Sequence record: PV593634.1 | Direction: 5' to 3' (one strand) | DNA: 64,000 nt | Shown: in pieces, positions 9,656 through 63,793 of the stretch | Layout of the letters: each line of letters begins with the position of its first letter | Numbering within the stretch: position 1 is the first letter of the stretch | The notes under the pieces: model-generated | Told to the model about the DNA's origin: nothing | Databases searched by the model: none | The model's input: the letters and a program-made list of their open reading frames with translations, nothing else | Translations under genes and position numbers: made by a program

Positions 9656-9664
9656 CCATAAATA

Positions 9665-9698
9665 ACTACTGGGGCGATCTTTTGATCGCTCCAATAGT
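9665..9698 (+). terminator. stem-loop
   Basis: TGGGGCGATC-TTTT-GATCGCTCCA core between tail genes. Confidence 0.5.
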
Positions 9699-9714
9699 TT
9701 AATCGAGGTTTTAA

Positions 9715-13506: not shown

Positions 13507-13507
13507 G

Positions 13508-13532
13508 AGGAAGGGGAGGAAACTCCCCTCCT
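13508..13532 (+). terminator. stem-loop (core identical to 27440..27455)
   Basis: AGGAAGGGGAG-GAAA-CTCCCCTCCT. Confidence 0.55.
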
Positions 13533-13550
13533 AATATCTGGGAGATATCC

Positions 13551-16500
13551 ATGTTTGTAGATCCAGACAAACCCCTACCGCCTGCGGGTGTCAAAGACGA
13601 CACACTAGGTTCGGTACTGGACGCGATTATTAATATATCTAATGCTCGTTCTGAAGTTCAGAAAGATGCTGTTGAGTTTGAGAAGGTTACAACTCAAGCA
13701 TTGATCGATGCTAATAAGAAGATCGACCGATTCGATACCGAAGTTCAAACCGCTTTAGCAGCTCACACCAATAAGAAAGGTGCGGTGCATGGCGAAACAA
13801 AAGAAACAGTAGGTCTTGAGAAGAAAGAGAACTGGAGACCGGCAACACTTAACGAACACGAAGCTGGACAATCGAAGAACACATTCGTAGTTCCTATTGG
13901 TTTGCATATGCTGGTTAAGAAGTTCTTGACTATCGATCCAACCAACTATCTTCGTTCACGTATCTTTCCTATCGCTTCTGGCGGACAGTTAGGTAACGTT
14001 CCTCAATGGCCATTTAACTGGAAAGAAGGTGAAGTAGTTGAGTCCTTCGAAGACCCAATGACTTTCTTTACTGATACTCCTTGGGAGTTCTCCAGCGATC
14101 AGGGTGTACGTATTTATCCTGCGATGAACGGTTCTGACGTCCTTACTCAGCATGTCGCCGATCCTGGCCGTGTTAAGCGCGCTGTAACCCCTTGGGGCGG
14201 TACTGACGTTCGTGTCTATAATAACACCCTTGATATCCGTAGAACCCGTCCTGGCGTCTTACGTGGCGAATCTAACGATGAACCATTTGGCGAATTGATT
14301 AAAGGTTCTTCTCACTTATTTGACCGTCACTCTGTTTTCTATGCTGAGAACGGGAAGATCGGTACTCGTGCATTTAACAAAGTGCGTTTACCGTTTGATA
14401 AGTTAAACCGTGAGAACTTCAATGATAACTGGAGTGGGATTATCGAAGCACGTGAGGAAACGATTTATAACATCTATACATCGTTCAAGAAAGGAAACAT
14501 CGGTGGACATGGTGAAGGGATTTACTTAGTCGTTGAAATGGATCTGTTCAACTACACCCAAAACGGTATCGTTGTTAAAGACGGTCCTGGTCGCCCTGCT
14601 GAAACTATTGCCACGGTTCAAGATCGTTTCAATACCTTTAGTTGGCAGATGCAAAACGCTAAGTTCAAAGTGATGGATCGTGGTCCAGGAACACCAACTG
14701 GTTTCTGTATGAACATTAAGGATATCCTGTCGTTCACCGATTCCCAGCGTGAAGAATTCTGGAATGGACTGGAACGCAATCAGGTAACTAAGATCGCGTT
14801 CACCTGGTCTAACCGTTTGAATGGTGATTTCAGTATCCGTATACCGATGGGGTTCTATAATAAGAACCGCACGGCATATAACAACTTCTACATGGACTTA
14901 GGTTTCCACGTATTGGAAAACAAACCAGGGCTGAGCGCAACCATCTCAGTTCGTCCTCTGCGTGATATCGATACCAACATTCAAACGCTGGATGCTAACT
15001 TCGATGTTAAGCCAACAGGTCGCTTCATTACCTATGGTCCGAACGTTGCCAATAACGTATTCCACCCACTCGTGTTTAACGGTGTGTTCGAATCGAATGG
15101 CGGTCACATCAAAACCTATACCTTCTATAACCGTCAGTATGTTGGTTTCTATCAGCATGACGTTAAGGGTGTTGGGGATTGGATTGCCAAAGGTGAAGCT
15201 ATTCAACCTAACCTGGTTAAGTATTACTATGGACAAATGTCAACCCTGAATAATGATGGGATGTACGGTGACCACCTTCGTCACATTCCTTTAGGGATGG
15301 AAGGAGATACGGTTTATTACTTAACCCATAGTCGTGACTGGAACCAACAGTATCGTAACTCCATTGCGCATACTCAGTTGGATACAGCTCCAATCATGTT
15401 AAGTGACTTGGGACACCCATATGGTCCATGGCGTAACGACCTGACTTGGATTAATCCGAACAACTCACGCATCCCTGACTTCCTGGTTGTAAACTCCGAG
15501 ACCGCAGTTGGATTCGAAACTAACTGTATGGTATTTAACTCCCAGAACCTGTTCAGAGGTTACACCGGTTATAAGTACGAACCGAATAACCCTAACTCTA
15601 CAGTGACGGGTGAAAACGAAGTTCAACTTGATGACTTGATTCTTTCCCACCTGGCTCGCGTTGGTGGCGGTTGGTCTGTTAACCACAAGCAACTGTTCTA
15701 TTACAAGAACCGTCTGTACTTCTTCACACAGTGTCTGTCCGAAAACGATTGGCCTGCTGATGATTACGATTGTTACTATGGTTGGTATAATTCTGCTTAT
15801 ATTGAAACAGATCAATATGGTCGTAACACAATCAAGTTGAATGGAACAGCTGAATCTAAAGTCACCATCAAGAAGATGAAGGTGAACACCAAAGCTTCAG
15901 CCACTCGGGTCTGGAACGATGTACAAGGTCGTGATGGGTTTAACCATACCGATGTTTACATGATGTTAATGAACCGTACAGGTAACGCTTCTAAATTCCA
16001 GCTGATGGTTAACCTTGCACCTCATAACAACTTCTACTTCGAGTTCGAGTTGTCTATTGATGAAGGGCTTGGAACAACGGATGTGATCCCTAACCCTAAC
16101 GCTATCGATCCGGTATTCCCTTACGGTCCAGATGGCTTCAAAGTTGATTACGATACTGTCATCGCTTATGGTACTAAGACACCGCAACGTCTGCACATAA
16201 ACTTCCAGTCTCCGGTTATGCTTAAGAAGTCCATGTGGAGCTACAGGAGGACCCCTGGACATTATGGTGTCTTTGCTCAATCTATCGGTACAGAAGTCGT
16301 TAACGGCGGTCTGATGAACGCTGTAGAGGGAACCGACATCTATCCTGTAGGATCTGCTGTTACCATTGGCGGTTCTAACATTATTGTTAAGAAACCGGTA
16401 AGCGCTTCAGAACGGCAGTTCAAAGGTAACGATGAGCTGTTTGTAAGGATGAACGGTCTTGATCTGGAAATGTACGGATTGAGAAACAACCCTAACGGTT

Positions 16501-18662: not shown

Positions 18663-18673
18663 TAAGTCATAAG

Positions 18674-18703
18674 ACCCTACCCTTCCTTTCGGAGGGGTAG
18701 GGG
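18674..18703. terminator. bidirectional stem-loop between convergent genes
   Basis: ACCCTACCCTTCC-TTTC-GGAGGGGTAGGGT. Confidence 0.75.
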
Positions 18704-18714
18704 TTATGTTTGTA

Positions 18715-19695
18715 TTAACCTACAACTTCACCTGAAGTATCACCACCAGATCTAACACCATTGTGTTTATGACCAAGGTATCTAATACCATCAATAGTCC
18801 AACCACCAGATACAGAACCAGTGCCGCCAAACTGAGAGAACGCCCCTTGAATGCCGACGTTACCTTCAACGGTGTAGTTTCCGTTTTGGTTGTAATTGCC
18901 TTCGTGTGTAACATTTCCTTTCATAAAGATCTCTGGGGAAGTCAGAGTTGTCTTCTTAGTTTCCATGGTAATGGAACTGTCAGCTTTAAGCTTCAGATCT
19001 TTACACTGTAAGTCAATGTTGTTCTTACCTTTCAACAGCATACTGTCTTCACAGCTCATCGTGATGTTCTTCTTCTCGATGTTCAGGTAGGACTTCTCTT
19101 GGTTGATAAAGGAGAAAGCATGCTCCATAGAGTTAATAGAGAGAATGTTATCCTCACCATCTACAATACCAAACTGACCATTACCTGTGTCCAAAGAGAT
19201 ACAGTAAGATGTTGGCTCCCCATTACCTTGGCCTGTAACTAACTGGACCATCTTTTTATGGGAAGATATCATGAATATGTAATAGTTATCCGGTGTTACC
19301 GGAGAGTTCTCATTCACTTCAGGAGAAGCAGAGTAAGCAAAGATTACCGTTTCTAAACGCAGAGTTCCATCCATACCGAAGTAAGTCCAACGATATTTGG
19401 ATTGACCTTTAAACTTATACACCACAACCTTACTACCATTACGAACATCGGGAGCAGTTACACGGTTGGTGTTAAAAGCTAACCAAGTTGCCGGTACGGT
19501 GTTGGAGGATAAAGTTGTACTGGAGTGCGTATCTCCTGTAGGTGTTTTGGTTGTCACCGTTTGCGTTTCGACTTGAGTTGTGACTTCACCGTCACCCTCA
19601 GGAAACATAGATGGGATGTAAACCTGAATCTCATCTGTATCCGTTTCCTTGTCCATCGACACGATGCCAATGCCGAGACATTCTAATACGTTCAT
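18715..19695 (-). CDS. baseplate central spike (phiKZ gp164-like / gpV-like)
   Basis: N-terminal OB-like region, beta-helix-like repeats (GNVTHEGNYNQNGNYTVEGNV) and a terminal metal-binding HxH apex (GHKHNGVRSG); divergent from SbcC as in phiKZ gp164/gp165. Confidence 0.8.
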   Translation of the reverse strand: MNVLECLGIGIVSMDKETDTDEIQVYIPSMFPEGDGEVTTQVETQTVTTKTPTGDTHSSTTLSSNTVPATWLAFNTNRVTAPDVRNGSKVVVYKFKGQSKYRWTYFGMDGTLRLETVIFAYSASPEVNENSPVTPDNYYIFMISSHKKMVQLVTGQGNGEPTSYCISLDTGNGQFGIVDGEDNILSINSMEHAFSFINQEKSYLNIEKKNITMSCEDSMLLKGKNNIDLQCKDLKLKADSSITMETKKTTLTSPEIFMKGNVTHEGNYNQNGNYTVEGNVGIQGAFSQFGGTGSVSGGWTIDGIRYLGHKHNGVRSGGDTSGEVVG

Positions 19696-48834: not shown

Positions 48835-48840
48835 CATAAA

Positions 48841-48868
48841 GCTACTCTACCCAAATGGGTAGAGTAGC
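48841..48868. terminator. bidirectional stem-loop between convergent units
   Basis: GCTACTCTACCC-AAAT-GGGTAGAGTAGC perfect 12-bp stem. Confidence 0.8.
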
Positions 48869-48893
48869 TAGTTTAATCACTTATTTATTTTTG

Positions 48894-49562
48894 TTACTGG
48901 AACTGAACATCAAAACGGTTGGTCGGAATTGAACCATCGTTAATATTGGTATTCAGTACCACATTGGTTTCCAGACTGAACGGGGTACCGCCATGTGTGC
49001 CAGCAACTGTAACAACTGCTGTTGCAGTAACCACAGCGTCAGTAGCAGACTGAATGGATTTGAATGTGTAGGTGGTGCCTTCACTGGTGAATTCAAACTT
49101 ACCAGCGATACTTTCAGGAGTAACGGTAACACCCGTAACAGAACTAGTGATATCTTCAGCGCCTTTCATTACTTTAAATGTCAGGTTTTGAGTAGCCCAC
49201 AGATTCATGGTCAAAGGTGTGCTGACATCGGAAAGCGTTGCTGCTTCAACAACATTAATAGTCAGACTAACCGTCTTGGTGGATTTACCCCAGTTTTCAG
49301 TATCTGCGTGTTCAGAACCTGCGTCAGCGTATTTGAATACAACTGTTGCATCTTGAACGCCCACAGCAACTGCAGTCATTACGAATGACACAGTACCCGC
49401 GCCAGCATCTGGCGTCCCGTCACCCAGCGTGATAAGACCTTTCAGGTCACTAGCCGCTTCATCAATGGTTACTTTACTTGGAACACCGACACCTTCAAAA
49501 GTAGGTTTGATGACCATAGCAGAGACTTGACCATTGTCAAGTGTATATGACTTATCGCTCAT
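48894..49562 (-). CDS. 222-aa two-domain beta-sandwich (Ig-like) protein, putative self-polymerising fibre subunit
   Basis: Thr/Val-rich; contains the family motif TPLTMNLWATQNLTFKVMKGAEDIT; ends IPTNRFDVQFQ. Confidence 0.65.
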   Translation of the reverse strand: MSDKSYTLDNGQVSAMVIKPTFEGVGVPSKVTIDEAASDLKGLITLGDGTPDAGAGTVSFVMTAVAVGVQDATVVFKYADAGSEHADTENWGKSTKTVSLTINVVEAATLSDVSTPLTMNLWATQNLTFKVMKGAEDITSSVTGVTVTPESIAGKFEFTSEGTTYTFKSIQSATDAVVTATAVVTVAGTHGGTPFSLETNVVLNTNINDGSIPTNRFDVQFQ

Positions 49563-49575
49563 TTTATATCCTTAA

Positions 49576-51099
49576 TTATAGGAACTCAACGTTGAACCGA
49601 TTGGTTGGAATCTCGCCGTTGTTTATTTCCGTTGATAAACTCACGGTCTGACTCATAACATGCTCAGTACCACCATCCATGAAGGTAAAGTTCAATTGAG
49701 CATTAGCTGCCAATTGCGTGGTGGTTGAAGAAGAGATTGCTTTAATCCCCCAACTACTACCAGAGAGTTTCACCAGTTCGTATTTTGACGATACTTCTGG
49801 AGAATCAGTCATTGTAATATTGGAGATTGGACCACTGATATCTACACCATTATTGGTGATGGTAAATACTAGAGGTTTGGTTTCCCATAACTTAAGCGTC
49901 AGTGGTGTTGTCTCCACAACATAATCGGCGGACTTAGGTGTCACAGTACATTGCTGTGCGTAAGAACCTGTTTTACCATTAGCGGAGAAACTCACACCAA
50001 CAGCATAATCGATATCGGCAGCCGTGGTGTTATCGCGCATCAACTGGAAGGTTACTGTGTCCGCAGTTTTCTCAGTAATTTTCAGATCGGCTTCATTCAT
50101 GCTCATGTTTACATCGGTAGCTGGTATAACGAGACCATCAAACTGGAATTCGATATCTTTAACATGGGTAGATAAAGATTCACCAACTACCTTACTTGGA
50201 ACCTTGCTAAGTACAATGCCAGGTTGATAAATGTAAGTAGGCAATCTGATAATAGCCATCTTGTCAATGGTATCGGTAGATTTACCAAATCGCAACTCAC
50301 TTTCCCCTATACCAACACCTGTTATACCGGAGAACTGTATAGCACGCTGGTTGGTGCCCTGTAGGTTGTTCCTCCATACGGTTGAGCGGTACAGGATACT
50401 ACTAGATAAAATATCAACATGCGTATTAGGGTTAGGTAGACCTTTATAATCGAGAGTAAAGATGTAAGGTACTGTGTTACCATCGTTATATGGAATGCGG
50501 AATTCATCGAACTCAACAGTTACTTTGGTTTCACGACCGTCATAAGGAGATACTCTCCATGACCCTCTAGCTGTTCTCACGGTTCCAGCCGGATCGATAT
50601 CTGTAGGTAGTTTGAATGTGTAATCGCATTCCACTATGCTATCAACAGTATTAACGGGTATTCCAGTCATATACCATTCATTTGCAGGACCACCTACAGA
50701 TGAATAAGGTTTAACCCACTGGTTGTCGACTATCGAAACTTCCAGTAATTGATCGGTTATGTCTTCCACACCGTGTTTAACAATGAATGGAAGCTGTGCA
50801 CTATGCCCCCACATCTTAGTATTAATCTGGTGAGTTTCGACAGTGAAGTCGATTTCGATGACAGTATGTTTAAATGTACAAGGGACTTTAACTTGATAAC
50901 GTCCCTGGTATGTAAATGTGAGGTTCAGGTTGTATAACGCCTCTTGTGTAACCCCGCCCTTAAATTCATAGGTGATCGAGTCATCCTGAATAGAAGCGAT
51001 CTGGACCCCAGCGTGGGGGTCCAATGTGATTACCATTTGAGGATCATTATTACTAATTACCTGACCAGCTATACGGACACTACTTTTTAGCGTGGTCAT
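49576..51099 (-). CDS. 507-aa Ig-like repeat protein (putative adaptor)
   Basis: N-terminus like 54599 (SNNDP.MVITL); C-terminus like the 222-aa gene (IPTNRFNVEFL). Confidence 0.65.
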   Translation of the reverse strand: MTTLKSSVRIAGQVISNNDPQMVITLDPHAGVQIASIQDDSITYEFKGGVTQEALYNLNLTFTYQGRYQVKVPCTFKHTVIEIDFTVETHQINTKMWGHSAQLPFIVKHGVEDITDQLLEVSIVDNQWVKPYSSVGGPANEWYMTGIPVNTVDSIVECDYTFKLPTDIDPAGTVRTARGSWRVSPYDGRETKVTVEFDEFRIPYNDGNTVPYIFTLDYKGLPNPNTHVDILSSSILYRSTVWRNNLQGTNQRAIQFSGITGVGIGESELRFGKSTDTIDKMAIIRLPTYIYQPGIVLSKVPSKVVGESLSTHVKDIEFQFDGLVIPATDVNMSMNEADLKITEKTADTVTFQLMRDNTTAADIDYAVGVSFSANGKTGSYAQQCTVTPKSADYVVETTPLTLKLWETKPLVFTITNNGVDISGPISNITMTDSPEVSSKYELVKLSGSSWGIKAISSSTTTQLAANAQLNFTFMDGGTEHVMSQTVSLSTEINNGEIPTNRFNVEFL

Positions 51100-51110
51100 T
51101 CATGATTCCT

Positions 51111-54100
51111 TTATTCTGGAAGTTTAACGTTTTGAACAACAGTAACAGTTTGCTTACTATTACCTTCGATGTCCTTAATGAATCCATCGCCAAGTTCGAG
51201 AGGATACATTCCTACAGTTAATTGAATGCTTGCTGGATATGCAAACTCGCCATCTTTAATAGTGAATGAGAACAATGCAGTGCCTGCAGCTTTAGCTGTA
51301 GCGTTGAAGGAGATCGTGCCGTCATTGTTGTTGACGAGATCTGCAACAGTAAACAGGTTATTCTCAACGGTCGGATTCAAGATCTGGGTATTTGTCAGGT
51401 TCTCAGATGGATCACCCCAACGGTTCTGATGGATCTGTAACGTAACCGGAGTTACGAGATTAGGCCCTAACAGAGTGTTGTCGTTGTTGGTTACAACGAT
51501 AGGTGTTTTGTTGACTTTTACAGAAATGCTACCATTACGGTACAAACCATCAACATCACTCAGGTGAAGCATCTTGATTGTAGCATAATCACCAGTCCAA
51601 CCAGTTTTAAGATCGAAACTGAAATCAGCCGTGGTTCCAACCTGAACAGCTTTAGCAGTGTCTTTGTTAAAGAAAGGATTACCGGTAACAGGGTTGTCAT
51701 AGTTGCGTTGCCAAATTAACTTACCCGTCATTGGGGAGTTATCAAGTCCATTCAAGAACTTGTCATTAATAACGCCTTCTGTGCTACCACCCCTGAATTG
51801 ACGTTCGCCAAAGTTGATGTTGGAGTTCATGTTGGCACCAGCTGTCTTGTTGATATCCAACCTGACATCGGCTTGGTCCAGTTCACCATAAGTATATGAA
51901 GGATCGGAAATCAACCGATACTTAATATAGAACCCTTTGAATCCATCGGTATCTTGCCGTATCTTAATGAAGAGTTTCCCTTCATCATCAACACCGACAA
52001 TCTCAGGTAGTTCTGCAACATCTCTTGTTGAAAGAGAGTAATCAATATCTGGATCTGTAGGATCCATCTCAATGCCGTCTTTCAAGAATACCAGTTTTTG
52101 TGGCGTACCATTTCTATTTCTCAGCATCGGGTTGATAGAGAAACGACGACCTTCAACTATACCGCTACCGTTATACACCATGAACTTTCTAGATGTAATA
52201 TAAACGCTAACTGTATCATCAGCAGTCAAACCAGCATTTGGCTTACCTTCTTTGATCCTGTAAGTCAATTTAACAGTTTGGTTCTCAAGCTCTGTTCCGG
52301 CAGGACTGGTCAGCATTACGTCACAATACCCACCTTGGGTAGTAACAGATTTAACCGTTATAGTTGGGTTATCAGAAACAACTTCGATAACGTCCCCACC
52401 TAAGTTAACTCCGCCCATCTGAGCAACTGCTCTAACCATAATGTCGGAATCAGACTTACCGTAAACAGTTTTGTACTGAGGTTGGACAATAACGCTGAGA
52501 CCTTCAATAGCGACAAGATCGATCTTCTTAGGATAATGAACGTCACCCTCAACAACAGAGAAGGTTACCGAACCCGGACCCTTAGATCCATTACCTGTAA
52601 CACCCAACGTGAATGTGCCGTTATTATTCACAACTGTAGCTGCTTTAACTGTGCCGCTAAACATGATGTTGCGAATATCGTTAGAGGTAGCGAAGGTATG
52701 ATCTTCCTGACCTAAACGTTCCTGAACTAAAGTAACGAATACATCAGTTTTAACACCATCAACAAAGTTAAAGGTATTATTCAGAACGTTAGCAGTGATA
52801 GGAGCTTGAGCGACCTGTTGGTTACCTGTTGCCTTATAAACAACACTTCCGCCAGGTAGACGAACATACTCAGTCATTTCAGCAAGAGCACCAGACCAAC
52901 CTGTCTTAGCGTTTCGACCAAAACCAATGTTGTTAGTTGTTGTCGGTTTATCCAGCAGTTCGATAATAGCATTACCGGTGGACGGATTGTTCACGTACTT
53001 GGTTAACAGAACCTTATCAACAGTAACGTCAGCATCACCGATCTGATACTTGTTGTTCATTGCTACTGTTTCTTGGTTCGGAGCCAAACTACCAGCTTGG
53101 GTATACTTGCAATCTGTTATAGCGCTACCTGCGGCTATGGTAACGATAGAAGTTACTAAGCCAGTACCCGGAACACCAGTAACCTTAACATCGTACTGAA
53201 TGATAGCAACGTTAGACCCACCGGAATAAATCAATTTACTAATGAACCCACCATCGTATTTATCTACGAACTGAGCATATGTAGACGACCCTGATTGAAC
53301 AGAGATAGTTACACGAGGATCGGTCACTGAGAACTCAGTACCATCGCCATCGGAGATAACAATGTCAGAAGAGAACAAGCTTCCCTTGGGTAATGTGTAA
53401 GAAATATTGTTCGGCGTCACGGTGACAATTTTAGCTGGAAGAACTACTAGACCTTGAACGTAGTTTGTGGTTCCTCCGTTATATTTCAGTGTGACGGTTG
53501 TACTATAACTCGCATTGGTCCCGGTATTGTTAGGCACGACGATTTGGTAATTTATTCCGTCGGGTTCTTGGGATTCAACGGTAAGCAATGCTGGGTTATC
53601 AATAGTAATTTCCAACAAATCGTTAGGTACTGGCTCACCGTCTAGCTCGACCACATACTTAACTTTAACGATAGCATTTTGCTTGCCGTTAATACTTGCC
53701 GGGTCGCGGCTAATCATAGCCAGACCTTTAACATATCCCTTCATCGGTAGAGTTAGTTCTAACTTATCTTTACCCAACACGGATGAAGCACCATTAGCTC
53801 TGAATACTAACTTACCAATAACCTCCACAGAAGAAGGCGCATTATAATTAACCCAGATCTCTTGTTCCGGTACTTTAAGATCTTGGCTAGCGTAAGTAAT
53901 AGGTGCTGTAACAGCTTCAGCTTGCACATAACGGACATATGGTGTCGCATCACGATAGTTACGATACTTGATCGAGAACTTAACTGGGCTTGGTGTTCCT
54001 ACAGGGATCTTAATAGAATCAGTTAAAAGAACAACTTTTAACTCTAAACCGTCATATTCAGCAATATTAAAAGTACCTTCGTAAGTACGAGTAACTTCTG

Positions 54101-54599
54101 GTAAGTCATCTGGTAAACGGAAAGTGTACATTACCTTTAACGTTGTAGCGTCAAATGCGGTATCTGATTCAATGGTCCAAGATTTAGCCCCAGTATCTCC
54201 GGCTTTCAGTACAGACTTGGGAACGAAAGACACATCCACCAATTGCGATGTGATATCTTCCTCTCCCTTCATTACTTTGAACGGTAATGCTTCACTACGT
54301 TCCCAACAGGTAGCCGCAATAGGTGTATCAACAATTTCCCAATCCTTCACTGTGCCCAAGTTAACGAGGGACAGTGGGATATCTAGAGAATAGAGTTCTT
54401 TATATACGAAAGACAGACTAAGATCGTAGAGGGTGTCCGTTGGGACACCCTCTTTAAACGAATATGTAATAAAGTCATTACCGATCGTGGTGATTTCGAC
54501 TTTCGCCGCATCAGCACCTTTCAAGGTAATGACCATATTTGGATCGTTATTACTTAGGGCCTGTCCATCGAGTAACATTGCTTGTTTTAATGTACTCAT
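51111..54599 (-). CDS. 1162-aa Ig-like repeat protein
   Basis: About 100-aa beta-rich repeats (W....LPF.V..G.EDIT; IAEYDG); ends ...VQNVKLPE. Confidence 0.7.
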   Translation of the reverse strand: MSTLKQAMLLDGQALSNNDPNMVITLKGADAAKVEITTIGNDFITYSFKEGVPTDTLYDLSLSFVYKELYSLDIPLSLVNLGTVKDWEIVDTPIAATCWERSEALPFKVMKGEEDITSQLVDVSFVPKSVLKAGDTGAKSWTIESDTAFDATTLKVMYTFRLPDDLPEVTRTYEGTFNIAEYDGLELKVVLLTDSIKIPVGTPSPVKFSIKYRNYRDATPYVRYVQAEAVTAPITYASQDLKVPEQEIWVNYNAPSSVEVIGKLVFRANGASSVLGKDKLELTLPMKGYVKGLAMISRDPASINGKQNAIVKVKYVVELDGEPVPNDLLEITIDNPALLTVESQEPDGINYQIVVPNNTGTNASYSTTVTLKYNGGTTNYVQGLVVLPAKIVTVTPNNISYTLPKGSLFSSDIVISDGDGTEFSVTDPRVTISVQSGSSTYAQFVDKYDGGFISKLIYSGGSNVAIIQYDVKVTGVPGTGLVTSIVTIAAGSAITDCKYTQAGSLAPNQETVAMNNKYQIGDADVTVDKVLLTKYVNNPSTGNAIIELLDKPTTTNNIGFGRNAKTGWSGALAEMTEYVRLPGGSVVYKATGNQQVAQAPITANVLNNTFNFVDGVKTDVFVTLVQERLGQEDHTFATSNDIRNIMFSGTVKAATVVNNNGTFTLGVTGNGSKGPGSVTFSVVEGDVHYPKKIDLVAIEGLSVIVQPQYKTVYGKSDSDIMVRAVAQMGGVNLGGDVIEVVSDNPTITVKSVTTQGGYCDVMLTSPAGTELENQTVKLTYRIKEGKPNAGLTADDTVSVYITSRKFMVYNGSGIVEGRRFSINPMLRNRNGTPQKLVFLKDGIEMDPTDPDIDYSLSTRDVAELPEIVGVDDEGKLFIKIRQDTDGFKGFYIKYRLISDPSYTYGELDQADVRLDINKTAGANMNSNINFGERQFRGGSTEGVINDKFLNGLDNSPMTGKLIWQRNYDNPVTGNPFFNKDTAKAVQVGTTADFSFDLKTGWTGDYATIKMLHLSDVDGLYRNGSISVKVNKTPIVVTNNDNTLLGPNLVTPVTLQIHQNRWGDPSENLTNTQILNPTVENNLFTVADLVNNNDGTISFNATAKAAGTALFSFTIKDGEFAYPASIQLTVGMYPLELGDGFIKDIEGNSKQTVTVVQNVKLPE

Positions 54600-54615
54600 G
54601 GATTTTACAGTTCCT

Positions 54616-57600
54616 TTATTCAGGGTTAAGTACAGATTGTGTTAATGTCACAGGATTATCAACGTCACCTTGTCCAGTGGATTGGAATCCTGGTGCTGGA
54701 GTAAGTCTCAGCTGAAGTGCGGTTTGTGTTACTGTTAAATCAGACCTACTAGTTAGCGTGGGGCGCCAGGGGTTAGTGAACCCAAGTCGAACAACAGTTT
54801 CTTTGCTGTTAACATCAATATCTTTAATAAATCTAACAGTGAAACTATCATCCGCAATAGATCCAGGAACTAGTTCAATAACATCGTTGGGGATCGGCTC
54901 TAACCAGGTTCCTTCACTAAGTTTCATATTGGTGCCATCATAGTTAGCTTTACCTTTAATGACAAAGGTATCGCCGTATTTTCCACTTATAGCTAATGGA
55001 GTCCATGGTGATACTTGGAACGGATAGTTGGGATTATAAGTAGTAAATTCAACAGGTACTTGCATTTCACCGGTAGGGTTCCCAGGATATCCCCCAACAG
55101 CTGTTATAACAAAATACTGAACACCGTCAATAACAAAAATTCCTGAATTGATGGTGTAGTCGATGCGTACCCGACCAGTATATTCGACACTACTCTTGTA
55201 AGTGACGTATTTACTCCCACCTTCACCATAACCCTTGTACCTTATTGGTGTCGTTATTTCTTCACCACGATAGAACGGCTTGATTTGAATCCAAGAACTC
55301 GACCCCCACGAACCAGCTCGTGTTCCAGTTATTGTGAAAGTTAACTCATTCCCGTCATACTCAGCGACGTTATAAGTAATATCGATAGTGTATCTTTTTC
55401 CCGACGCGTCATCTGGTAGACCATACTCCCATGTCACAACCAATGGTCCTGCTGGACGCGCTGTTTCCGAAACTATTTGATACGTTCCAGTTGGGTTCAG
55501 TTCCAATATGTTTTCGTTGGGTAAACGAGAAACATCAATCGGGGTGACGGTTCCTCCGCCAGTTTGATTGATGGTGAAAGGCACCCCAGTAAGTTTATCC
55601 CAAACTTTAACGTTCATTACTTTAGGAGTAACTTCGAGGTTCTTATTGACATTAATTGTCAAATCAGCAGGAGTAGTACGCCCACTCCAGTTAGCGATAA
55701 CCTTACATTCCACTGTTTCATCAGCATCAGTATTTTTGATTATTCTAACTGTGATGTCGTTAGCACCCTTACCTACAACCTGTCCATATCCAGCCGGTTC
55801 TACTGTATAGTTGATGTTTCCATCAGCCATATTGAGTTTGCTTCCATTCCACAACAGAGTTCCAGGGATCGTTTCCTGATAACCTGCAACACCAGTAATG
55901 GACGACTTAGAAAGAGTGAATGCCATACCGGATGAATCAACAGTCGCTTCAATAGCCAGGGTCACTTTGTAACTGAATCCATCAGTATCCGTAACTGTGA
56001 ATTCAGCAGTAACATCACCAGCCGCACCACCGCCAATAAAGTTGGCAGAGAACTCGCCGTTAACGTTCTTGATCTCGTTCACAGACTGGATAGGACCAGT
56101 GGTTACAGCAGTACCTGCGATAGTGGCATTCGCAAAGTTATACTGCACAATAGAATCATCAATGAATCGTTCCTGACTCAAAGTGAATTTCACTTCGGTA
56201 GAAGAACCTTTGAAACCTTCAAAGCTGGTTTTGTTCGGAGTGACCGTAATCAATGCAGGAGGAATAATCAGTTCAGAATCACGCAATACCCAGTTATCAG
56301 CAAGATCAGGGAATACCGCCACCATGTTTACAATAATTTTTCCACCCGTCCAGCCAGACTTAAACTTCAGTGCATCGCGATAGATATCACCAGGGGCACC
56401 TATAAGTTCGAGTTCGCCAAGTAAAGCATTACCCGTTGAAGGATCGTTTTTACCTGATAATGATAAAACAGTTGTGGGTTTGGAAATACTGTAACCTGAC
56501 CTTTGGAATTCAACAGGGATAATGTTCTCTGCATTACCCAAAGGTTCCTTCAAAGCTTTTAACGTTACTGGGATTAAGTTAGTCGTGCTGAATGTCGCTT
56601 TTACATCGACGTACCCAGAACCTTCAGGAGGTTTGACGCCATCATTGTAGGTCACATATATCCGGTTGATAAATGTACCAGCCGTTCCAGGATCTCTATT
56701 GAAAGCAAACCACATATAGCGATCTTCGATACCCACGATATCAATAATAACTGGACTGGCTCCAGCATTACTCATTTCGTAAGACAACCGCGGATCATTA
56801 GGTTTTAGTAGTTTTCCACTATAATAGATCTTAGCATCCCAGCTATATGGTCTTGCATAAGGTTGAGTACTTGGTACTAACGTAATTGGTAATACGTACA
56901 AGCCCTTGGTGACGTAGATCCCGGTGAAGTTACCAGCCCATTTGTTTAGTCCAACAGTTGTTCCTGGAGTATCATCAATCGTGAGGGTTAACACACATGC
57001 GTTAGAGGCAGCACCTGATGTATCAGGTACGGTATACTCTATGATAACACCTAAATCGTCATCAGTAGGTCCGATGATGCGGATAGGGGCGGTGAACCAA
57101 GTACCTACTTGTACAATCCCACTAAACCCTGACTTCAGTGTTTTACCTTTATACTCGGGCCAAACGGTGAATCGGTTAGTGTTATTTCTGGAAATAGGGA
57201 TTTCCGTGATTACACCAACACCTCGACCATAGTCGGCCGAAACTTTAAACGTGATTCCATCCCAAGCAGGAATGCGATATTGACCATAACCCACATGAGT
57301 TTCCCAAACCCCATCAACTAGAACTTCATAAGTAAAGACACCACGAGTACCGGTAGCGACTTTACCTGGGTTATCAGCAACCGACCATTTATTAGGATTG
57401 TTAGGATCCGTTTTAAGATAGACGTTATTGGGTACAAGCTGAACATTTCTTATCTGGCCTGTTACGTCCTGATCATTAACAAGAACTTGGAACGGAGGTA
57501 CTGTGAATTCCTGGAACATAACCGTTTGAACGTCGCCAGGTATCATCTTCAGAACAGGTGCAGTGTCAGCAACTAGATTGATAACAAAAGTCTGTTTCCC

Positions 57601-59175
57601 TACGGCAGTTTCAGTAGGAGTGAATTCATAAGTGGCTTGGAAATCGCCATTAACACCTTTCCCGGAAACATAGAACAATTCATTTTTGTCATTGGTAGGT
57701 TGAGACACACCAACAGCCCCGGCCCCCGTTTGTGATACCAGTCTGTATGTTCCAGGGAGTGTGACTAGCGCGTCACCGCGCTGCTGTTGCGCTTTCAAAA
57801 GAATAGGTGTAAATCCTTCCGTTCTTCCATCAATAACCTTAGGTTCATAAGTAGCTACTACAGGAGCAGCTTCAATAACATCACCATAATCAGCAAGGCG
57901 TCCATACTGCCACTGTTTCTCCCACAAAGGGGTTTCTGCTTCAAAGCGAACTTTCAAATACATCGCTTGTATATTATAAGTTTGCTTGCGATAATCCACA
58001 GCATGTCTGGTAGCGAACTGTCTTAGAGAGTTAAGTGGGACATTGGTGAATGGCTCTTTATATAGGTTCGCAAATGTAACCATATCGATCCCAACTAACT
58101 CACCTTTCTCTATAATAGCACCTTTGGCTGTCGGGCGATTTGAAGCATCGTAGTTATCAGGATAGTTAAGGTCTGTAACTTGCCATACCCAATTTTCGTC
58201 ACTATTCGCCAGTACTTTATACTTGGGTAGAATTCCAAATTGTGTTGGGAAAGCAGCAGGTCTTTTATGACAATACCATGACGTACCAGAACGAGCGGTA
58301 ACCCCGTTATAAACCATAACCACGTTAATGATGTAGTTTGTTTTGACAGAGACTTCTGGTAAGAACTCCCCCACCAAACCTTCAGGCAGTGCCTCTATGA
58401 ATTTGACCCCTGCGTCATCAGCAGCAACGTTACCGGCCAACCGAACACTCATGCCAGGAGCGTTGTAAGCTACTGGATTAACACCGCGATAGTATTTACA
58501 GAAGACAATTTGCTTATCTCCTTTAACACCATTGATGGTACGATAACGAGGTTCGATCCAGATACGAAGATCTGTGGCATTGGAAGCAACTACGTCGGCA
58601 TAACCTTGCAATACAACAGTCTTAGTCGGCTCCTCAGGTCTAAAGACATGCACCATGAACCATTTGCTATCACCAAGCTCCACTCCCGTCACATCCATGC
58701 GATGGGTGACACCATCTTCCAATACACCCTTATATTCTATTCCTAGTCCAGAGTTCGTATTAACGGTGTTGTTAACACCGATCTCACCAGCCCCAAGTAG
58801 TCTACCGTGATAGCTTACCTGGAACTGTACCATGAAGCCATTGGTTAATAGGACACGTTCATGCCCGTCAAACGACCCAACAATACGAACTACTAACTGA
58901 CTGGCTGTAGTTCCTTTTACTGTGACATCTGTTTTGGCTTCGAGAGGGAAAGGACTACCTTCCCAATCCACCTCTAATTTGAAAGTTGCTTCCTCGGTAA
59001 GATCTGTCTCATCTGCACCCACAACGGTAAAACTATAGTCACCATTTGGTTTGAGATAAGGGGACGGTTGTCCCCCTACTTCGATGGCAGTAAGACGGAC
59101 ATCTTTAGTGATATCCGTCCCAGTGATAGGATCATTGACCGCGAAAGGAACCGATGACGATTGGTTTAATTCCAC
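54616..59175 (-). CDS. 1519-aa Ig-like repeat protein (colinear paralog of 59192..63793)
   Basis: Starts MELNQSSSVPFAV and ends PVTLTQSVLNPE; GTG start after AGGA. Confidence 0.7.
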   Translation of the reverse strand: MELNQSSSVPFAVNDPITGTDITKDVRLTAIEVGGQPSPYLKPNGDYSFTVVGADETDLTEEATFKLEVDWEGSPFPLEAKTDVTVKGTTASQLVVRIVGSFDGHERVLLTNGFMVQFQVSYHGRLLGAGEIGVNNTVNTNSGLGIEYKGVLEDGVTHRMDVTGVELGDSKWFMVHVFRPEEPTKTVVLQGYADVVASNATDLRIWIEPRYRTINGVKGDKQIVFCKYYRGVNPVAYNAPGMSVRLAGNVAADDAGVKFIEALPEGLVGEFLPEVSVKTNYIINVVMVYNGVTARSGTSWYCHKRPAAFPTQFGILPKYKVLANSDENWVWQVTDLNYPDNYDASNRPTAKGAIIEKGELVGIDMVTFANLYKEPFTNVPLNSLRQFATRHAVDYRKQTYNIQAMYLKVRFEAETPLWEKQWQYGRLADYGDVIEAAPVVATYEPKVIDGRTEGFTPILLKAQQQRGDALVTLPGTYRLVSQTGAGAVGVSQPTNDKNELFYVSGKGVNGDFQATYEFTPTETAVGKQTFVINLVADTAPVLKMIPGDVQTVMFQEFTVPPFQVLVNDQDVTGQIRNVQLVPNNVYLKTDPNNPNKWSVADNPGKVATGTRGVFTYEVLVDGVWETHVGYGQYRIPAWDGITFKVSADYGRGVGVITEIPISRNNTNRFTVWPEYKGKTLKSGFSGIVQVGTWFTAPIRIIGPTDDDLGVIIEYTVPDTSGAASNACVLTLTIDDTPGTTVGLNKWAGNFTGIYVTKGLYVLPITLVPSTQPYARPYSWDAKIYYSGKLLKPNDPRLSYEMSNAGASPVIIDIVGIEDRYMWFAFNRDPGTAGTFINRIYVTYNDGVKPPEGSGYVDVKATFSTTNLIPVTLKALKEPLGNAENIIPVEFQRSGYSISKPTTVLSLSGKNDPSTGNALLGELELIGAPGDIYRDALKFKSGWTGGKIIVNMVAVFPDLADNWVLRDSELIIPPALITVTPNKTSFEGFKGSSTEVKFTLSQERFIDDSIVQYNFANATIAGTAVTTGPIQSVNEIKNVNGEFSANFIGGGAAGDVTAEFTVTDTDGFSYKVTLAIEATVDSSGMAFTLSKSSITGVAGYQETIPGTLLWNGSKLNMADGNINYTVEPAGYGQVVGKGANDITVRIIKNTDADETVECKVIANWSGRTTPADLTINVNKNLEVTPKVMNVKVWDKLTGVPFTINQTGGGTVTPIDVSRLPNENILELNPTGTYQIVSETARPAGPLVVTWEYGLPDDASGKRYTIDITYNVAEYDGNELTFTITGTRAGSWGSSSWIQIKPFYRGEEITTPIRYKGYGEGGSKYVTYKSSVEYTGRVRIDYTINSGIFVIDGVQYFVITAVGGYPGNPTGEMQVPVEFTTYNPNYPFQVSPWTPLAISGKYGDTFVIKGKANYDGTNMKLSEGTWLEPIPNDVIELVPGSIADDSFTVRFIKDIDVNSKETVVRLGFTNPWRPTLTSRSDLTVTQTALQLRLTPAPGFQSTGQGDVDNPVTLTQSVLNPE

Positions 59176-59191
59176 GATAATTTCCTGTTAG

Positions 59192-62100
59192 TTATTCCGG
59201 GTTGAGAACGCCCTGTTTAAGAGTCACAGGATTCTCCATATCCCCAGAGCCTGTTGATTCGAAACCAGGAGCTGCTGTCAACTTCATACTGACTGCTTGT
59301 TGTGTTACAGTCAATGCTCCTCTACCCTGTGTTTCCCCAGTGACATTCAACCGTGCATCAAGAGTCGTTGTCACTGTGTTAACATCGATGTCTTTAAGGA
59401 ATCTAACTTTAAATCCATCCTTAGTTTTAGAACCAGGTACTGTTTCTAAGATCCCTTGCGGATAGAATAGCATATCTGTATACACAGCTTGCATCAAGTC
59501 AGATGGTGTTCCATTACGCCATACCTTAAAGTTGAGCTGATACTCCTCACCGAATTTACCCACCAATGGATTAGGATTAAAGTCACTCAATCCCGTTGGA
59601 ATGTTCGGATTGTAAATGCTGACAATGAGTGTAGCGACGGCGATATCTTTGCCTAACACATTCCCTGTAGGACTAACTCTGATAGACCAAGTGTTTGGCT
59701 TACCATAGAGTTCAACATTTTTACCTCTGAGTGTTAAGCGACCTTGACCTGGGAAGTTGGTATAACCTTCCTGGTTAACACAAGGTACGTCTATAGTCCC
59801 TAGGTTGGTTGGGTTTTCTGTAGCAGGTTCGGCTTTACGATAAACGTAGAAGTCAGCTTGGAACGACCCGTTATATACAGTTCGATATAGTTCGGCAGAA
59901 GGAATGATCTCCAACTCATGGCCGTTAAACTCAGCCACGTTGTAGGTGATATCTATGGTCCTTTTGACTTCTTCCGGATCTGTCGGTAAACGATATTCCC
60001 ATGTAACTATTTCGGTTCGGGCTGGCATTACACCTTCACCTTTCACAGTCCACATGTTCACAGCCGGTTTATTCCTGTTCTCCATCTTAACGGCGATTAC
60101 AACATTGTCGTTAACTGGTTTACAGTCTAATACCGTATTTGTGATATCAACTTCACCTTCCTTCATTACAAAAGGATAACCGTTAATACGTTCCCAGACC
60201 TTAACGTTGAATACCTTAGGTTCGATACTCAAGTTTTTCTTAACGTTTACCGTTACTGGTTGAGAAGCGGTCATGCCTAAGAAATTGGCAGTGATATTAA
60301 CCACCTGGGTTACGTCATCAGGGGAATTACGCACAATACGAAGATCGAACGTTCCAGCTGTTCCGTTCTCGAATTCAACCCAACCTTCAGGCTCAACCGA
60401 ATAGATCATATTGCCGTTAGCGTTATCCCAACGAAGATCGGTATCATTATACTTAACCGTACCAGTTATCGTTGTTACATCACCAGCGACTCCTGTCACA
60501 ACGTTGTTCTGAAGAACCATCGACATCTGACTTGAATCGATAACCGCATTGACGTTTAGAACAACATCATGACTATCACCGTCGTCTTCAGTAATCGTCA
60601 GAGTTATTGTGCCAGGTCCTTGGGTAGCGTTACCGTAGACATCAACAATAAAGGTCCCATTGTTGTTAAAGGCACCTGAAGCTTCCTTGATAGAGCCAGT
60701 AACTGCACCAACAGGATAAATGTCAGCGTTAGCAAAGTTATGCGTAACTAACTCCTCACCGATAAGACGTTGTTGTGATAAGGTGAAGCGGATCTCTGTT
60801 TTGCGGTTTGCTATACCATCAATTTGATCAGTGGCTTGTGTTACTACAATTGGCGCTGCTGGAACGGTGAATGTAAGCGGTACTGAGGTATTTGGATAAC
60901 TAGCTGAACCAAACGTCATGGAATAGGTGATATCTCCACCTTTATATCCAGAACTAAATTTCAAGTGCCCAGTATTTACATACTCAACCCTGTTCTTGAC
61001 AACGTCAGAATCTTCCGGAGTTACCTTAAAGTAAGGAGCGGTTAACGGTACAATTGATTTAGGATCTAAAGGGGGGTTGTTTGCTACCTTGACATCTATA
61101 GGGATCAAGTTATCTTTATTGGGAAGCGGCGCTTCTTTAAGTATTACATTTATTGGAGCAATTTCCCTTGACTTACTAAATCCAACAGGGAAGAATGCTT
61201 CAGCGGATGTATACTTAACACCGTCCTTAACATAGTCGACAACGAAATACTGGTTGTACGTACTCTCACTTGGTGGATACTTGGTAACAAAAAGATAAGT
61301 TATGTTAACGGTTGATGATACTGGCATGACATATGCGTTCTTTCCATTAACACCTGTATCGATAATTCTTACTGTGATATTAGGATCATTATTAGGAATA
61401 ACATCCCCATCCCATTTGAATACAGGCTTCCATGTCAAGGTGTTATTTAAACCTGTCGGAGAAGAGGTAGGGGTTGCTGTCACAACAGATATTCCTTTAG
61501 GAACCGCAGTACAGTTGACCCATTCAAACACTTTGGTTTGTTTGTCAACTAACTCGGCATCAGGAATTCCTTTTACTTTATAAGTAAATAGTTGGGTATT
61601 AGTTACAAATGAGGTATTAGCCTCTACGGTAACAATTACCCCATCACCAGCTTCATTAACAACCTGTTTGCGAATGGTCAAATTACTGCTTAAAGGGGAA
61701 AGCTCAATAAGATCAGCTGCTGGTCTGCCTTTGTAAGTAGGGTAGAACGTGAAATCTTTATTCCCGCCGACAGGTATGGTCAGAACTTTACCTACTCTGT
61801 CACCAGCTACGTATTCTGCATTAGCTACTAACCAGACTCCATCCCAAGCAGCAATACGGTAATCACCTGCACCTACACAGTTATAAGTAACTCCATTCAC
61901 TTCAACGTCATATGTGAAGTAGGTCCTGGTTGTAGTTTCTGTTGTAAGAGCATTTACAATCTCCCACTCAGTCGTACTCCCCTCCACATATTTAACATAA
62001 GTTGTTTCCATCAACTTGATGTTTTTAACTTTGCTAGTTTCTAATGTCCCATTAACGATCGCACCATTTACCTTGACGTTAAATGGAAGCACCTTAAATC

Positions 62101-63793
62101 GATCCCAGATTTTGGTAGAGGTGACAAATGGTTCATAGTCGATATCCAAAGTGTTATCGGCTCTGATGGTAAACTGAACTGTTTGTCCTGTAATTTGGTT
62201 ATCGGCACTACGGAATGTCATACTGGCTACAGCTTCTCCAGATACACCACGAGTAGTGAACTGAAGCATGGCATTGCCTTCAGGCGTTGTCGTAAGCTGT
62301 CTATACTGAAGAGAACCCGTTACCGTGGCTGTGCTAAAGACACCTGGAATACGAACCTTTTGCCCATCACGTTCTTGCCAGGCAGAAATGAGTACAGAAG
62401 GATATCTACCCGCTATACCGGTAACAACTTCTGTGTTTAACCGATATTCAATAGGGGCCATTTCGATTGTGGTTTCTGCATTGAGACGCCACATGGTCTG
62501 ATACAGAGCAGGATCGGTGATAAAAGGAAGATCCAGAACAAATCCAGATAGTAAAACTCTTTGCTTCATCCAACTGGCAGAAATCTCTTTAACCAATTGG
62601 TTAATTGAGTTCAAAGGCGTCCCAGGTTCAACAACTACCTGTTGAATGATACCACCACCAGAGAACTGGTTAACAAAGATACTACCCGCTCTGACCTTGG
62701 CACCTTCTATAGTGTACCACGGCGGTATGTTCAATCCGTTAACTGGTCCAAACTGAGTAACGAGCTTCTGTACTTGGTTGGCGAACAAAGGCTGTTGCAT
62801 TACCGCTGTGGACATCATATCGGTTCCTGGAACCCATGTGACATCAACCCTTGCTACAGCTTCAGATCCAGTATATCCCGCCTTGAGATCGAATTGTCCA
62901 TAGAAAGATCCAGCTACCGGATTGCTGGAAGCAACCGTAGGTTTACCTAATATCTTAAAAGTGATGTGGTCTTCGAATCGTTCATCAATTGTTATGACAG
63001 TACTTACGTTTGGTACATTCGTGGAACCCACTAATGTGAGTGTAAGACCTGGATCGTTTAACTTAATTGGGATCCCGTCTTTATATACAGTAAACCAACC
63101 GTTAATTAATTCTCCCTGATGACCAAATATAGAACCAGACGCCTGATGGATTGGCTGAATGCGCATCCCAGCAACACCAACCCTCAGATTCATGTCGATC
63201 TGGATCCAATCCTCCCCTTCTACCAATCCAGTAGTTCCTTTTCTCAGGACATAAAACGTGAAGGGTCCGATCATTGTATCGGCACCTTGCCATTTAACAT
63301 CCAGCGTTTTGCCATCTGCTTTGGTGGTTACACTAATAAATTTGATTGGGTAGGCGGTGTCTGGTGGAGTACCAGGTTTGTGCTTCTGAATTATTACGTC
63401 GTCAGCCGTTAAGTCTATACCACGGTAACTACTTTGTAACTCCATATTTAAAACTGAGTTAACAGGTGCGACAATAACAGAACCTAAAGGCTTAAGAACA
63501 CTTACTTTCATGAAGTCAGCTTGAGTAGCCTGAATCGTCATGTCTGTTGTAGCGGTTAATCGATGGACTTCCCCGTCAAAGGGAACGTCCAGGGTAAATG
63601 TTGTCGGAGTTACAATCTCATCTCGTGCAGCGTTCACAACTGTAAAGGTGTAATCGCCATTCGGTTGAAAGTAGGGGAAGTCTCCCTCCCCTACTGATTC
63701 AATAGAAATAAGCTGGACATCTTTCGTGATATCCAGCCCGGAGATAGGATCTGTAACTGCGAACGGGACAGCACTAGACTGTTTCAGTTCCAC
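59192..63793 (-). CDS. 1533-aa Ig-like repeat protein
   Basis: Starts MELKQSSAVPFAV and ends PVTLKQGVLNPE; GTG start after AAGGA. Confidence 0.7.
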   Translation of the reverse strand: MELKQSSAVPFAVTDPISGLDITKDVQLISIESVGEGDFPYFQPNGDYTFTVVNAARDEIVTPTTFTLDVPFDGEVHRLTATTDMTIQATQADFMKVSVLKPLGSVIVAPVNSVLNMELQSSYRGIDLTADDVIIQKHKPGTPPDTAYPIKFISVTTKADGKTLDVKWQGADTMIGPFTFYVLRKGTTGLVEGEDWIQIDMNLRVGVAGMRIQPIHQASGSIFGHQGELINGWFTVYKDGIPIKLNDPGLTLTLVGSTNVPNVSTVITIDERFEDHITFKILGKPTVASSNPVAGSFYGQFDLKAGYTGSEAVARVDVTWVPGTDMMSTAVMQQPLFANQVQKLVTQFGPVNGLNIPPWYTIEGAKVRAGSIFVNQFSGGGIIQQVVVEPGTPLNSINQLVKEISASWMKQRVLLSGFVLDLPFITDPALYQTMWRLNAETTIEMAPIEYRLNTEVVTGIAGRYPSVLISAWQERDGQKVRIPGVFSTATVTGSLQYRQLTTTPEGNAMLQFTTRGVSGEAVASMTFRSADNQITGQTVQFTIRADNTLDIDYEPFVTSTKIWDRFKVLPFNVKVNGAIVNGTLETSKVKNIKLMETTYVKYVEGSTTEWEIVNALTTETTTRTYFTYDVEVNGVTYNCVGAGDYRIAAWDGVWLVANAEYVAGDRVGKVLTIPVGGNKDFTFYPTYKGRPAADLIELSPLSSNLTIRKQVVNEAGDGVIVTVEANTSFVTNTQLFTYKVKGIPDAELVDKQTKVFEWVNCTAVPKGISVVTATPTSSPTGLNNTLTWKPVFKWDGDVIPNNDPNITVRIIDTGVNGKNAYVMPVSSTVNITYLFVTKYPPSESTYNQYFVVDYVKDGVKYTSAEAFFPVGFSKSREIAPINVILKEAPLPNKDNLIPIDVKVANNPPLDPKSIVPLTAPYFKVTPEDSDVVKNRVEYVNTGHLKFSSGYKGGDITYSMTFGSASYPNTSVPLTFTVPAAPIVVTQATDQIDGIANRKTEIRFTLSQQRLIGEELVTHNFANADIYPVGAVTGSIKEASGAFNNNGTFIVDVYGNATQGPGTITLTITEDDGDSHDVVLNVNAVIDSSQMSMVLQNNVVTGVAGDVTTITGTVKYNDTDLRWDNANGNMIYSVEPEGWVEFENGTAGTFDLRIVRNSPDDVTQVVNITANFLGMTASQPVTVNVKKNLSIEPKVFNVKVWERINGYPFVMKEGEVDITNTVLDCKPVNDNVVIAVKMENRNKPAVNMWTVKGEGVMPARTEIVTWEYRLPTDPEEVKRTIDITYNVAEFNGHELEIIPSAELYRTVYNGSFQADFYVYRKAEPATENPTNLGTIDVPCVNQEGYTNFPGQGRLTLRGKNVELYGKPNTWSIRVSPTGNVLGKDIAVATLIVSIYNPNIPTGLSDFNPNPLVGKFGEEYQLNFKVWRNGTPSDLMQAVYTDMLFYPQGILETVPGSKTKDGFKVRFLKDIDVNTVTTTLDARLNVTGETQGRGALTVTQQAVSMKLTAAPGFESTGSGDMENPVTLKQGVLNPE

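Follow-up and report, generated by a model that had tools for sequence, protein, structure and literature searches.

The window analysed here, a stretch of 64,000 nucleotides from record PV593634.1, belongs to the genome of Shewanella phage SXP01, a 269.9 kb jumbo myovirus whose kin include Pseudomonas phage OBP, Erwinia phage AH04, Kosakonia phage Kc263, Edwardsiella phage pEt-SU and Klebsiella phage N1M2. It holds a six-gene minus-strand operon of Ig-like repeat proteins of, in order, 3381, 1533, 1519, 1162, 507 and 222 amino acids, with a summed length of more than 8,300 residues. The 3381-aa product is annotated and its gene begins beyond the window. As the preliminary description had stated, the 222-aa open reading frame (p222) is real, and it is both the final and the smallest gene of the operon. 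The intergenic gaps among the five in-window genes measure 11-16 nt, and an AAGGA-type ribosome-binding site stands before each of them. A scan for sigma-70 promoters gave sites that were rarer than chance.

To describe the chain members we used two pairs of terminal sequences. In the first pair, the tail T2 reads G-S-I-P-T-N-R-F-x-V and the head H2 is the N-terminal domain of p222 type (M..K...L..GQ......KPTFEG...SDLKGL). The second pair consists of the tail T1 (..PVTLxQxVxLPx) and the head H1 (M.TLKQ...DG...SN.DP.MVITL). A further Ig-like module, the type-C domain, recurs in several of the proteins. In these terms, the in-window part of the operon is composed as follows.

59192-63793, minus strand: p1533, which follows the 3381-aa protein; truncated type-C head (profile match only from position 20) and T1 tail.
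54616-59175, minus strand: p1519, a paralogue of p1533; truncated type-C head and T1 tail.
51111-54599, minus strand: p1162, a middle link; H1 head and T1 tail (..QTVTVVQNVKLPE).
49576-51099, minus strand: p507; H1 head, internal type-C domain, C-terminal type-C domain (residues 397-490) and T2 tail.
49579-49629, minus strand: T2 tail of p507 (residues 491-507), proposed donor to the p222 head.
49569-49573, minus strand: Shine-Dalgarno sequence AAGGA of p222, with a 6-nt spacer to the ATG.
48894-49562, minus strand: coding sequence of p222, ATG start, 222 aa; homologue of OBP gp204 and AH04 gp195.
48840-48869, minus strand: terminator hairpin of the operon, a 13-bp stem and T-run after the p222 stop, between convergent genes.

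Several observations on the record and its surroundings are reported here in their own right. The 1519-aa open reading frame is without any annotation in GenBank PV593634.1, and the p1162 gene is annotated there 7 codons short (MLLDGQ start); the longer start MSTLKQAM.. agrees with the conserved H1 head of relatives. Apart from the Ig-chain operon, a conventional fibre and baseplate module occupies positions 5966-19695 of the window. It contains three large paralogues of 1229, 1263 and 1703 aa, with N-terminal matches to PHROGs labelled 'minor tail protein'/'tail protein' or 'virion structural protein', and a baseplate assembly protein (phrog_3216) adjoins them. The 1229- and 1263-aa paralogues have ~250 N-terminal residues in common (phrog_2163, phrog_26147), and the 1703-aa paralogue matches phrog_2163 at residues 51-127 only. 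SXP01 also encodes a GroEL-like chaperonin (L014:28020-29585, record positions 216020-217585), as do OBP and EL, and this could matter for the folding of giant Ig-repeat proteins. Finally, the SXP01 paper (PMC12571629) gives a head of ~55 nm and calls the tail flexible; such a head looks too small for a 270-kb phiKZ-like genome, and the published micrograph may therefore not be of SXP01.

The p222 protein itself can be divided into three parts.

49254-49562, minus strand: H2 head, Ig-like, residues 1-103; proposed acceptor of the preceding protein's tail; motifs KPTFEG, SDLKGL, VVFKY and WGKST.
48948-49241, minus strand: type-C Ig-like domain, residues 108-205; common to the p507 C-terminus, and internal in p507, p1162 and p1533.
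48897-48947, minus strand: T2 tail NINDGSIPTNRFDVQFQ, residues 206-222; conserved C-terminal peptide outside the fold; proposed donor.

The fold of p222 is Ig-like by structure prediction only. Its AlphaFold2 model, computed with 24 homologues, reached a pLDDT of 92.3 and contains two complete beta-sandwiches (residues 1-103 and 108-205), of which the H2 head is predicted as a seven-strand sandwich (strands 4-9, 13-18, 31-33, 44-52, 57-64, 68-78 and 93-103). The last 12-17 residues of the protein were modelled without secondary structure at a pLDDT of 55-57, and in a 415-aa, four-domain variant of the family the tail was disordered, with a pLDDT below 50. A tail docked in cis was seen in neither of these two monomer models, and the disordered tail of the 415-aa variant is uninformative on whether it folds back on the head. 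The p222 sequence has no Cys and no signal peptide, and its N-terminus MSDKSYTL runs directly into strand 4-9. The 24 homologues are 51-96% identical to the window protein at 99-100% coverage, and they share its domain order and its tail. A tblastn search with p222 gave matches in OBP, AH04, Kc263 and pEt-SU, where the corresponding proteins (OBP gp204, AH04 gp195, pEt-SU gp131 and Kc263 PQD71_gp022) are full-length counterparts with 55-62% identity, the same two domains, the tail and the same operon position; OBP and AH04 differ from SXP01 in having a further H2-headed gene after the p222 homologue.

The preliminary description had drawn attention to the likeness between the C-termini of p222 (IPTNRFDVQFQ) and p507 (IPTNRFNVEFL), and these were indeed identical at 8/11 residues. 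The likeness extends upstream: residues 114-221 of p222 and 397-506 of p507 are 37% identical (E = 4e-19), which corresponds to a shared module of ~110 residues plus the tail, and the C-terminal match exceeds chance by so much because a common domain ends there. A six-frame search of the window for P[TS].RF plus a following NV or DV gave these two C-termini only. The same description had also held that the p222 N-terminus lacks exactly the strand that the tail supplies, as judged from the internal sequence ETKVTVEF. This part did not hold up. The AlphaFold2 head has its full seven strands, two of them N-terminal, and internal homologues in giant relatives have the same starting point, no strand being added in front. 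Moreover, BLAST and MAFFT placed ETKVTVEF and LELKVVLL on LETNVVLNT (residues 197-205), so that the original alignment was off by one strand. Since ETKVTVEF thus aligns with the last strand of the domain, residues 206-222 are an extension beyond the fold.

A preference for high-expression codons had likewise been read into the gene, in line with a high-copy subunit. We found that the fraction of C-ending Asn, Tyr, Phe, His, Asp and Ile codons was 0.458 (window mean 0.515 +/- 0.075), equal to that of the neighbouring chain genes, and that GC3 was 0.374 against 0.422 for the window. Among the codons named, CTG alone was enriched (7/11 Leu). The Shine-Dalgarno strength of -5.9 kcal/mol is the same as that of the neighbouring genes and gives no sign of high expression either.

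The tail stands out by its conservation. In the p222 family, the tail columns N208, D209, G210, I212, P213, T214, R216, F217 and V219 are invariant. A comparison of 73 non-identical modules, drawn from the two paralogous lineages, put the mean identity to the consensus at 0.69 for the tail and 0.52 for the domain, and no segment of the family is conserved better than the tail. Within NDGSIPTNRF all ten codons vary synonymously among 15 phages, with 2 amino-acid changes in 150 codons. Synonymous variation at every codon means that selection acts on the peptide and not on the DNA, and from this codon pattern the T2 tail is under protein-level purifying selection. A profile search against 1.84 billion cluster representatives found only 40 proteins. 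In about 30 cluster representatives, with carriers of 95-4123 aa, the type-C domain plus tail always ended at the last or second-last residue, and the H2 head in the same search almost always began at residues 1-4. A Rosetta-stone fusion, with a T2 tail lying internally, was found in none of the proteins that this search returned. The tails are not fully alike at their ends: those of p222 type mostly read ...RFDVQ[FM]..Q, and upstream donor tails read ...RF[ND][VI]E[FIM] with a hydrophobic end. The T2 tail has no significant similarity to any strand of the H2 head, its HMM scores not differing from those of shuffles, which gives no support to the idea that the tail imitates the N-terminal strands of the head. 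MAFFT aligned the tail to the beginning (linker and first strand) of the next domain after internal type-C domains, which is suggestive only.

We then compared tails and heads between loci. Of the 19 loci compared, 12 came from phage records and IMG/VR and 7 from assemblies; a scan of metagenomes contributed only one locus. Adjacent gene pairs comprised 26 of T2 followed by H2 and 19 of T1 followed by H1, with 0 cases of T1 followed by H2 and 0 of T2 followed by H1, where it should be kept in mind that these pairs come from related phages and are hence not independent events. Any T2-tailed gene in the 19 loci was followed by an H2-headed gene immediately or by none. The T1/H1 pair tracked gene order in 19/19 cases (window 49576-63793, minus strand, and loci L002-L026).

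The proteins that carry these ends are diverse. Carriers of T2 tails were giant proteins, H1-headed proteins (202-3124 aa) and proteins of p222 type. H2 heads were present on p222-type proteins, on the 415-aa protein, on at least four unrelated tail-less cap types (OBP gp203-like, AH04 gp194-like, a 501-aa type and the 495-aa protein of Yubaba) and on a 62-aa remnant in N1M2. After giants with a T2 end the following gene has an H2 head, and after those with a T1 end it has an H1 head. Pairing that persists across such differing architectures is, as far as sequence and gene order can speak, more than frozen synteny. It supports, as the simplest reading, that each C-terminal tail would dock on the N-terminal domain of the next product.

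What follows the p222-type gene differs between phages. This gene was present in 16 loci and was followed by a tail-less H2-headed cap in 8 (OBP, AH04 and six metagenomic phages); it was the last gene in 7 (SXP01, Kc263, pEt-SU and four assemblies), and the remaining locus is uninformative on the cap as its contig ends early, hence a proportion of 8/15 with a cap. N1M2, Survivor and Yubaba have no p222-type gene, and their protein with an H1 head and a T2 tail is followed by the cap directly. Two individual loci merit a separate record. N1M2 gp159 (L003:14442-14630) is a 62-aa open reading frame with the start of an H2 head only, located after the T2-tailed gp160, and is apparently the remnant of a truncated cap. 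In one metagenomic relative (L020:8815-9204), a 129-aa DUF1353 protein is encoded on the same strand after the p222-type gene, in the place of an H2-headed cap.

Within SXP01, no chain member but p222 combines H2 with T2. When the whole genome was searched with the profile in six frames, the p222 head proved to be the sole N-terminal H2 head (138.5 bits); the giant protein contains weak internal H2-like Ig repeats (best 24.9 bits) that are without the conserved head motifs. No cap gene was found elsewhere in SXP01, either by this six-frame whole-genome search or by tblastn with OBP gp203. Cognate ends of the other pair, H1 plus T1, occur on p1162, OBP gp206 and the 1174-aa protein of Survivor, so that matching ends characterise middle links in general and do not mark out a polymer.

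A different kind of evidence came from the junction between the 3381-aa protein and p1533 (J0). The type-C profile matched the heads of p1533 and p1519 only from its position 20, at residue 1 of the proteins (20.5 and 16.9 bits), which means that these heads are N-terminally truncated type-C domains that lack the first ~19 positions. The C-terminus of the 3381-aa protein, ..TPMTVEYGKSYATPFKVEVAQ (L001:1-1749), is a near-copy of p1533 residues 1-12, with 6/12 residues identical, and the overlap of tail and head was significant against shuffles (z = 3.9, p = 0.003). The same ungapped overlap test gave mean z values of 0.45 and 0.19 at the T1/H1 and T2/H2 junctions (J1 and J2), which are not significant; J0 was the only significant one. 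On sequence grounds, J0 has the look of a single Ig domain shared out over two overlapping polypeptides, as strand donation or exchange would give, and it would set a precedent within the operon itself.

We also considered whether the chain resembles any known system. The chain proteins are labelled 'hypothetical' in every deposited genome, we found no literature on their genes, and the SXP01, N1M2 and Kc263 papers are silent on them. Pfam and PHROG scans of all chain members, the caps and the N-terminus of the giant gave nothing above threshold, and neither the family profile nor the giant N-terminus matched any PDB sequence. Among the best 50 matches of each of the Foldseek searches against PDB and BFVD were generic tandem-Ig proteins and the family itself. 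The top match was the tandem Ig pair 1ya5 (titin Z1Z2; E = 4e-8, TM about 0.3, 12% identity), which reflects generic tandem-Ig geometry and not homology. In the titin Z1Z2-telethonin complex, a partner peptide extends the Ig sheets by beta-sheet augmentation.

The closest functional analogies are two kinds of pili, and p222 belongs to neither. In the type V pili of Bacteroidota (FimA, Mfa1), the subunit consists of two sandwiches and its C-terminal donor takes the place of the following subunit's N-terminal strand, and the tip, adaptor, stalk and anchor subunits differ in the ends that they carry (PMC13655056). The AlphaFold2 model of p222 is similar in its two beta-sandwiches and its C-terminal candidate donor, with no sequence or structure match to pilins, and the overlap of giant tail and p1533 head recalls a donor that replaces the acceptor's own N-terminal strand. 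Unlike the type V pilins, p222 has no lipoprotein signal, Cys, protease site or secretion, and its chain is mostly hetero-oligomeric and made in the cytoplasm. In chaperone-usher pili, the donor strand is N-terminal, the acceptor is an Ig fold without its G strand, and the tip subunit has no donor. Here the likeness is one of concept, namely an orphan beta-strand that joins Ig-like subunits non-covalently; the candidate donor of p222 is C-terminal, the acceptor fold is complete, and no chaperone or usher genes or Pfam matches were found in the operon. A third comparison is with the long tail fibre of T4, in which gp34, gp35, gp36 and gp37 form a series that follows the order of their genes, small connectors linking the large proteins. 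Such fibres are trimeric and beta-structured and have dedicated chaperones. Serial joining of this kind, as in T4 fibres and branched tailspike assemblies, is what the strict pairing of tail and head types in the 19 loci would suggest for the present chain; the SXP01 chain differs in being made of Ig-like strings predicted as independent monomeric folds.

On balance, we think that p222 is probably the tail-to-head connector of this chain, most likely a plug-and-socket connector at the chain end rather than a proven self-polymerising shaft. Its place would be that of the last connector in a modular chain of Ig-like repeats, colinear with gene order and peculiar to OBP-like jumbo phages, and the T2 peptide of one member would dock, as an added beta-strand or peptide, on the H2 head of the next product. 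Since the head is a complete fold in the model, docking would take place by edge-strand augmentation or strand exchange and not by completion of a groove. Against this reading stand the tails left undocked in both monomer models, the non-significant similarity between T2 tail and H2 head, the kinship of the phages behind the gene pairs, and the conventional fibre and baseplate module elsewhere in the window. In SXP01 the head of p222 would receive p507, which has an H1 head and a T2 tail; elsewhere, as in OBP, AH04 and a number of metagenomic phages, it is a tail-less H2-headed cap, the last member of the chain, that would receive the tail of the p222-type protein. With no cap encoded in SXP01, p222 would be the distal end there, and its tail may be free, sit on another partner, or add one or a few p222 copies; limited self-association may occur in cap-less phages, which keep the tail. 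The earlier observation is partly confirmed and its interpretation partly supported: a donor together with a matching acceptor on p222 stands in outline, on the evidence of the fold-external terminal tail, its selection and the gene pairing, and the incomplete, pilin-like acceptor fold does not stand, as the modelled head and the internal homologues are complete.

The original proposal was that p222 homopolymerises head-to-tail like a pilin into a high-copy shaft, and the cap, where present, would then terminate the polymer. Its best argument is that the p222 tail is conserved even though its only cognate head in SXP01 is its own: p222 bears both T2 and H2, and the tail is invariant in SXP01 and six other cap-less phages although the sole encoded H2 head is that of p222. 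The set of donor-only, donor-plus-acceptor and acceptor-only proteins also resembles a pilus tip fibrillum, and the C-terminal donor combined with two sandwich domains recalls the type V pilins (PMC13655056). We nevertheless consider this proposal unlikely. No strand is missing from the head, no pilins were among the best 50 matches of each Foldseek search, and neither codon use nor Shine-Dalgarno strength is better than that of the neighbouring genes. Cognate ends are not specific to p222, given the H1 and T1 ends on p1162, OBP gp206 and the Survivor 1174-aa protein; the p222-type tails mostly end in Q and the upstream donor tails in a hydrophobic residue; the tail has a heterologous downstream partner gene in 8/15 phages; and tandem p222 copies were seen in none of the 19 loci.

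To a similarly small degree of probability, T2 could be an anchor for a partner other than H2, such as the baseplate, the tail, the capsid or the internal H2-like repeats of the giant protein; p507 and p222 would then attach in parallel, and the adjacency of T2 and H2 would be mere synteny. The presence of nearly the same tail on two proteins of one phage fits this idea, as do the weak internal H2-like domains of the giant protein (best 24.9 bits) and the retention of the tail in cap-less phages. It is harder to reconcile with the finding that the upstream tail type predicts the next head type even across differing architectures, and the internal repeats of the giant do not have the conserved head motifs. 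Least probable, in our estimate, is a tail without any intermolecular role, be it a gene-fission relic, a chaperone tag or an element that acts in cis on folding or stability. The MAFFT placement of the tail on the linker and first strand after internal type-C domains is what a fission relic would give, and a GroEL-like chaperonin is among the products of SXP01. On the other side, one would not expect a relic to be conserved above all other segments at ~50% overall divergence with saturated synonymous change; AlphaFold2 does not pack the tail on its own domain; and the tail is strictly terminal and paired with H2 genes.

The connector reading can be extended to the operon as a whole, although we offer this extension tentatively and regard it as possible rather than probable. 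OBP-like jumbo phages would build an appendage of >8,000 residues as a non-covalent 'daisy chain' of Ig repeats, in which C-terminal donor peptides either bind to the N-terminal strands of the following product or exchange with them. This would amount to pilus-like donation in the cytoplasm without chaperone, usher or protease, with p222 as a self-compatible link that could be inserted once, several times or never and would in this way set the distal length or valency.

The most useful outcome of this analysis is the tail/head code of the whole operon, through which docking and self-polymerisation become testable with small fragments; the speculative 'pilin-like' idea is in this way turned into a binding question with defined fragments. 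If true, the sequence code that relates T0, T1 and T2 tails to truncated type-C, H1 and H2 heads predicts which proteins connect, and could supply orthogonal peptide-domain connectors for protein engineering. It would also make the 'hypothetical' giant proteins of a whole jumbo-phage clade annotatable and would explain the swapping of distal parts between phages. If the joints are real, they would represent an undescribed route by which phages build very long, thin appendages from interchangeable modules.
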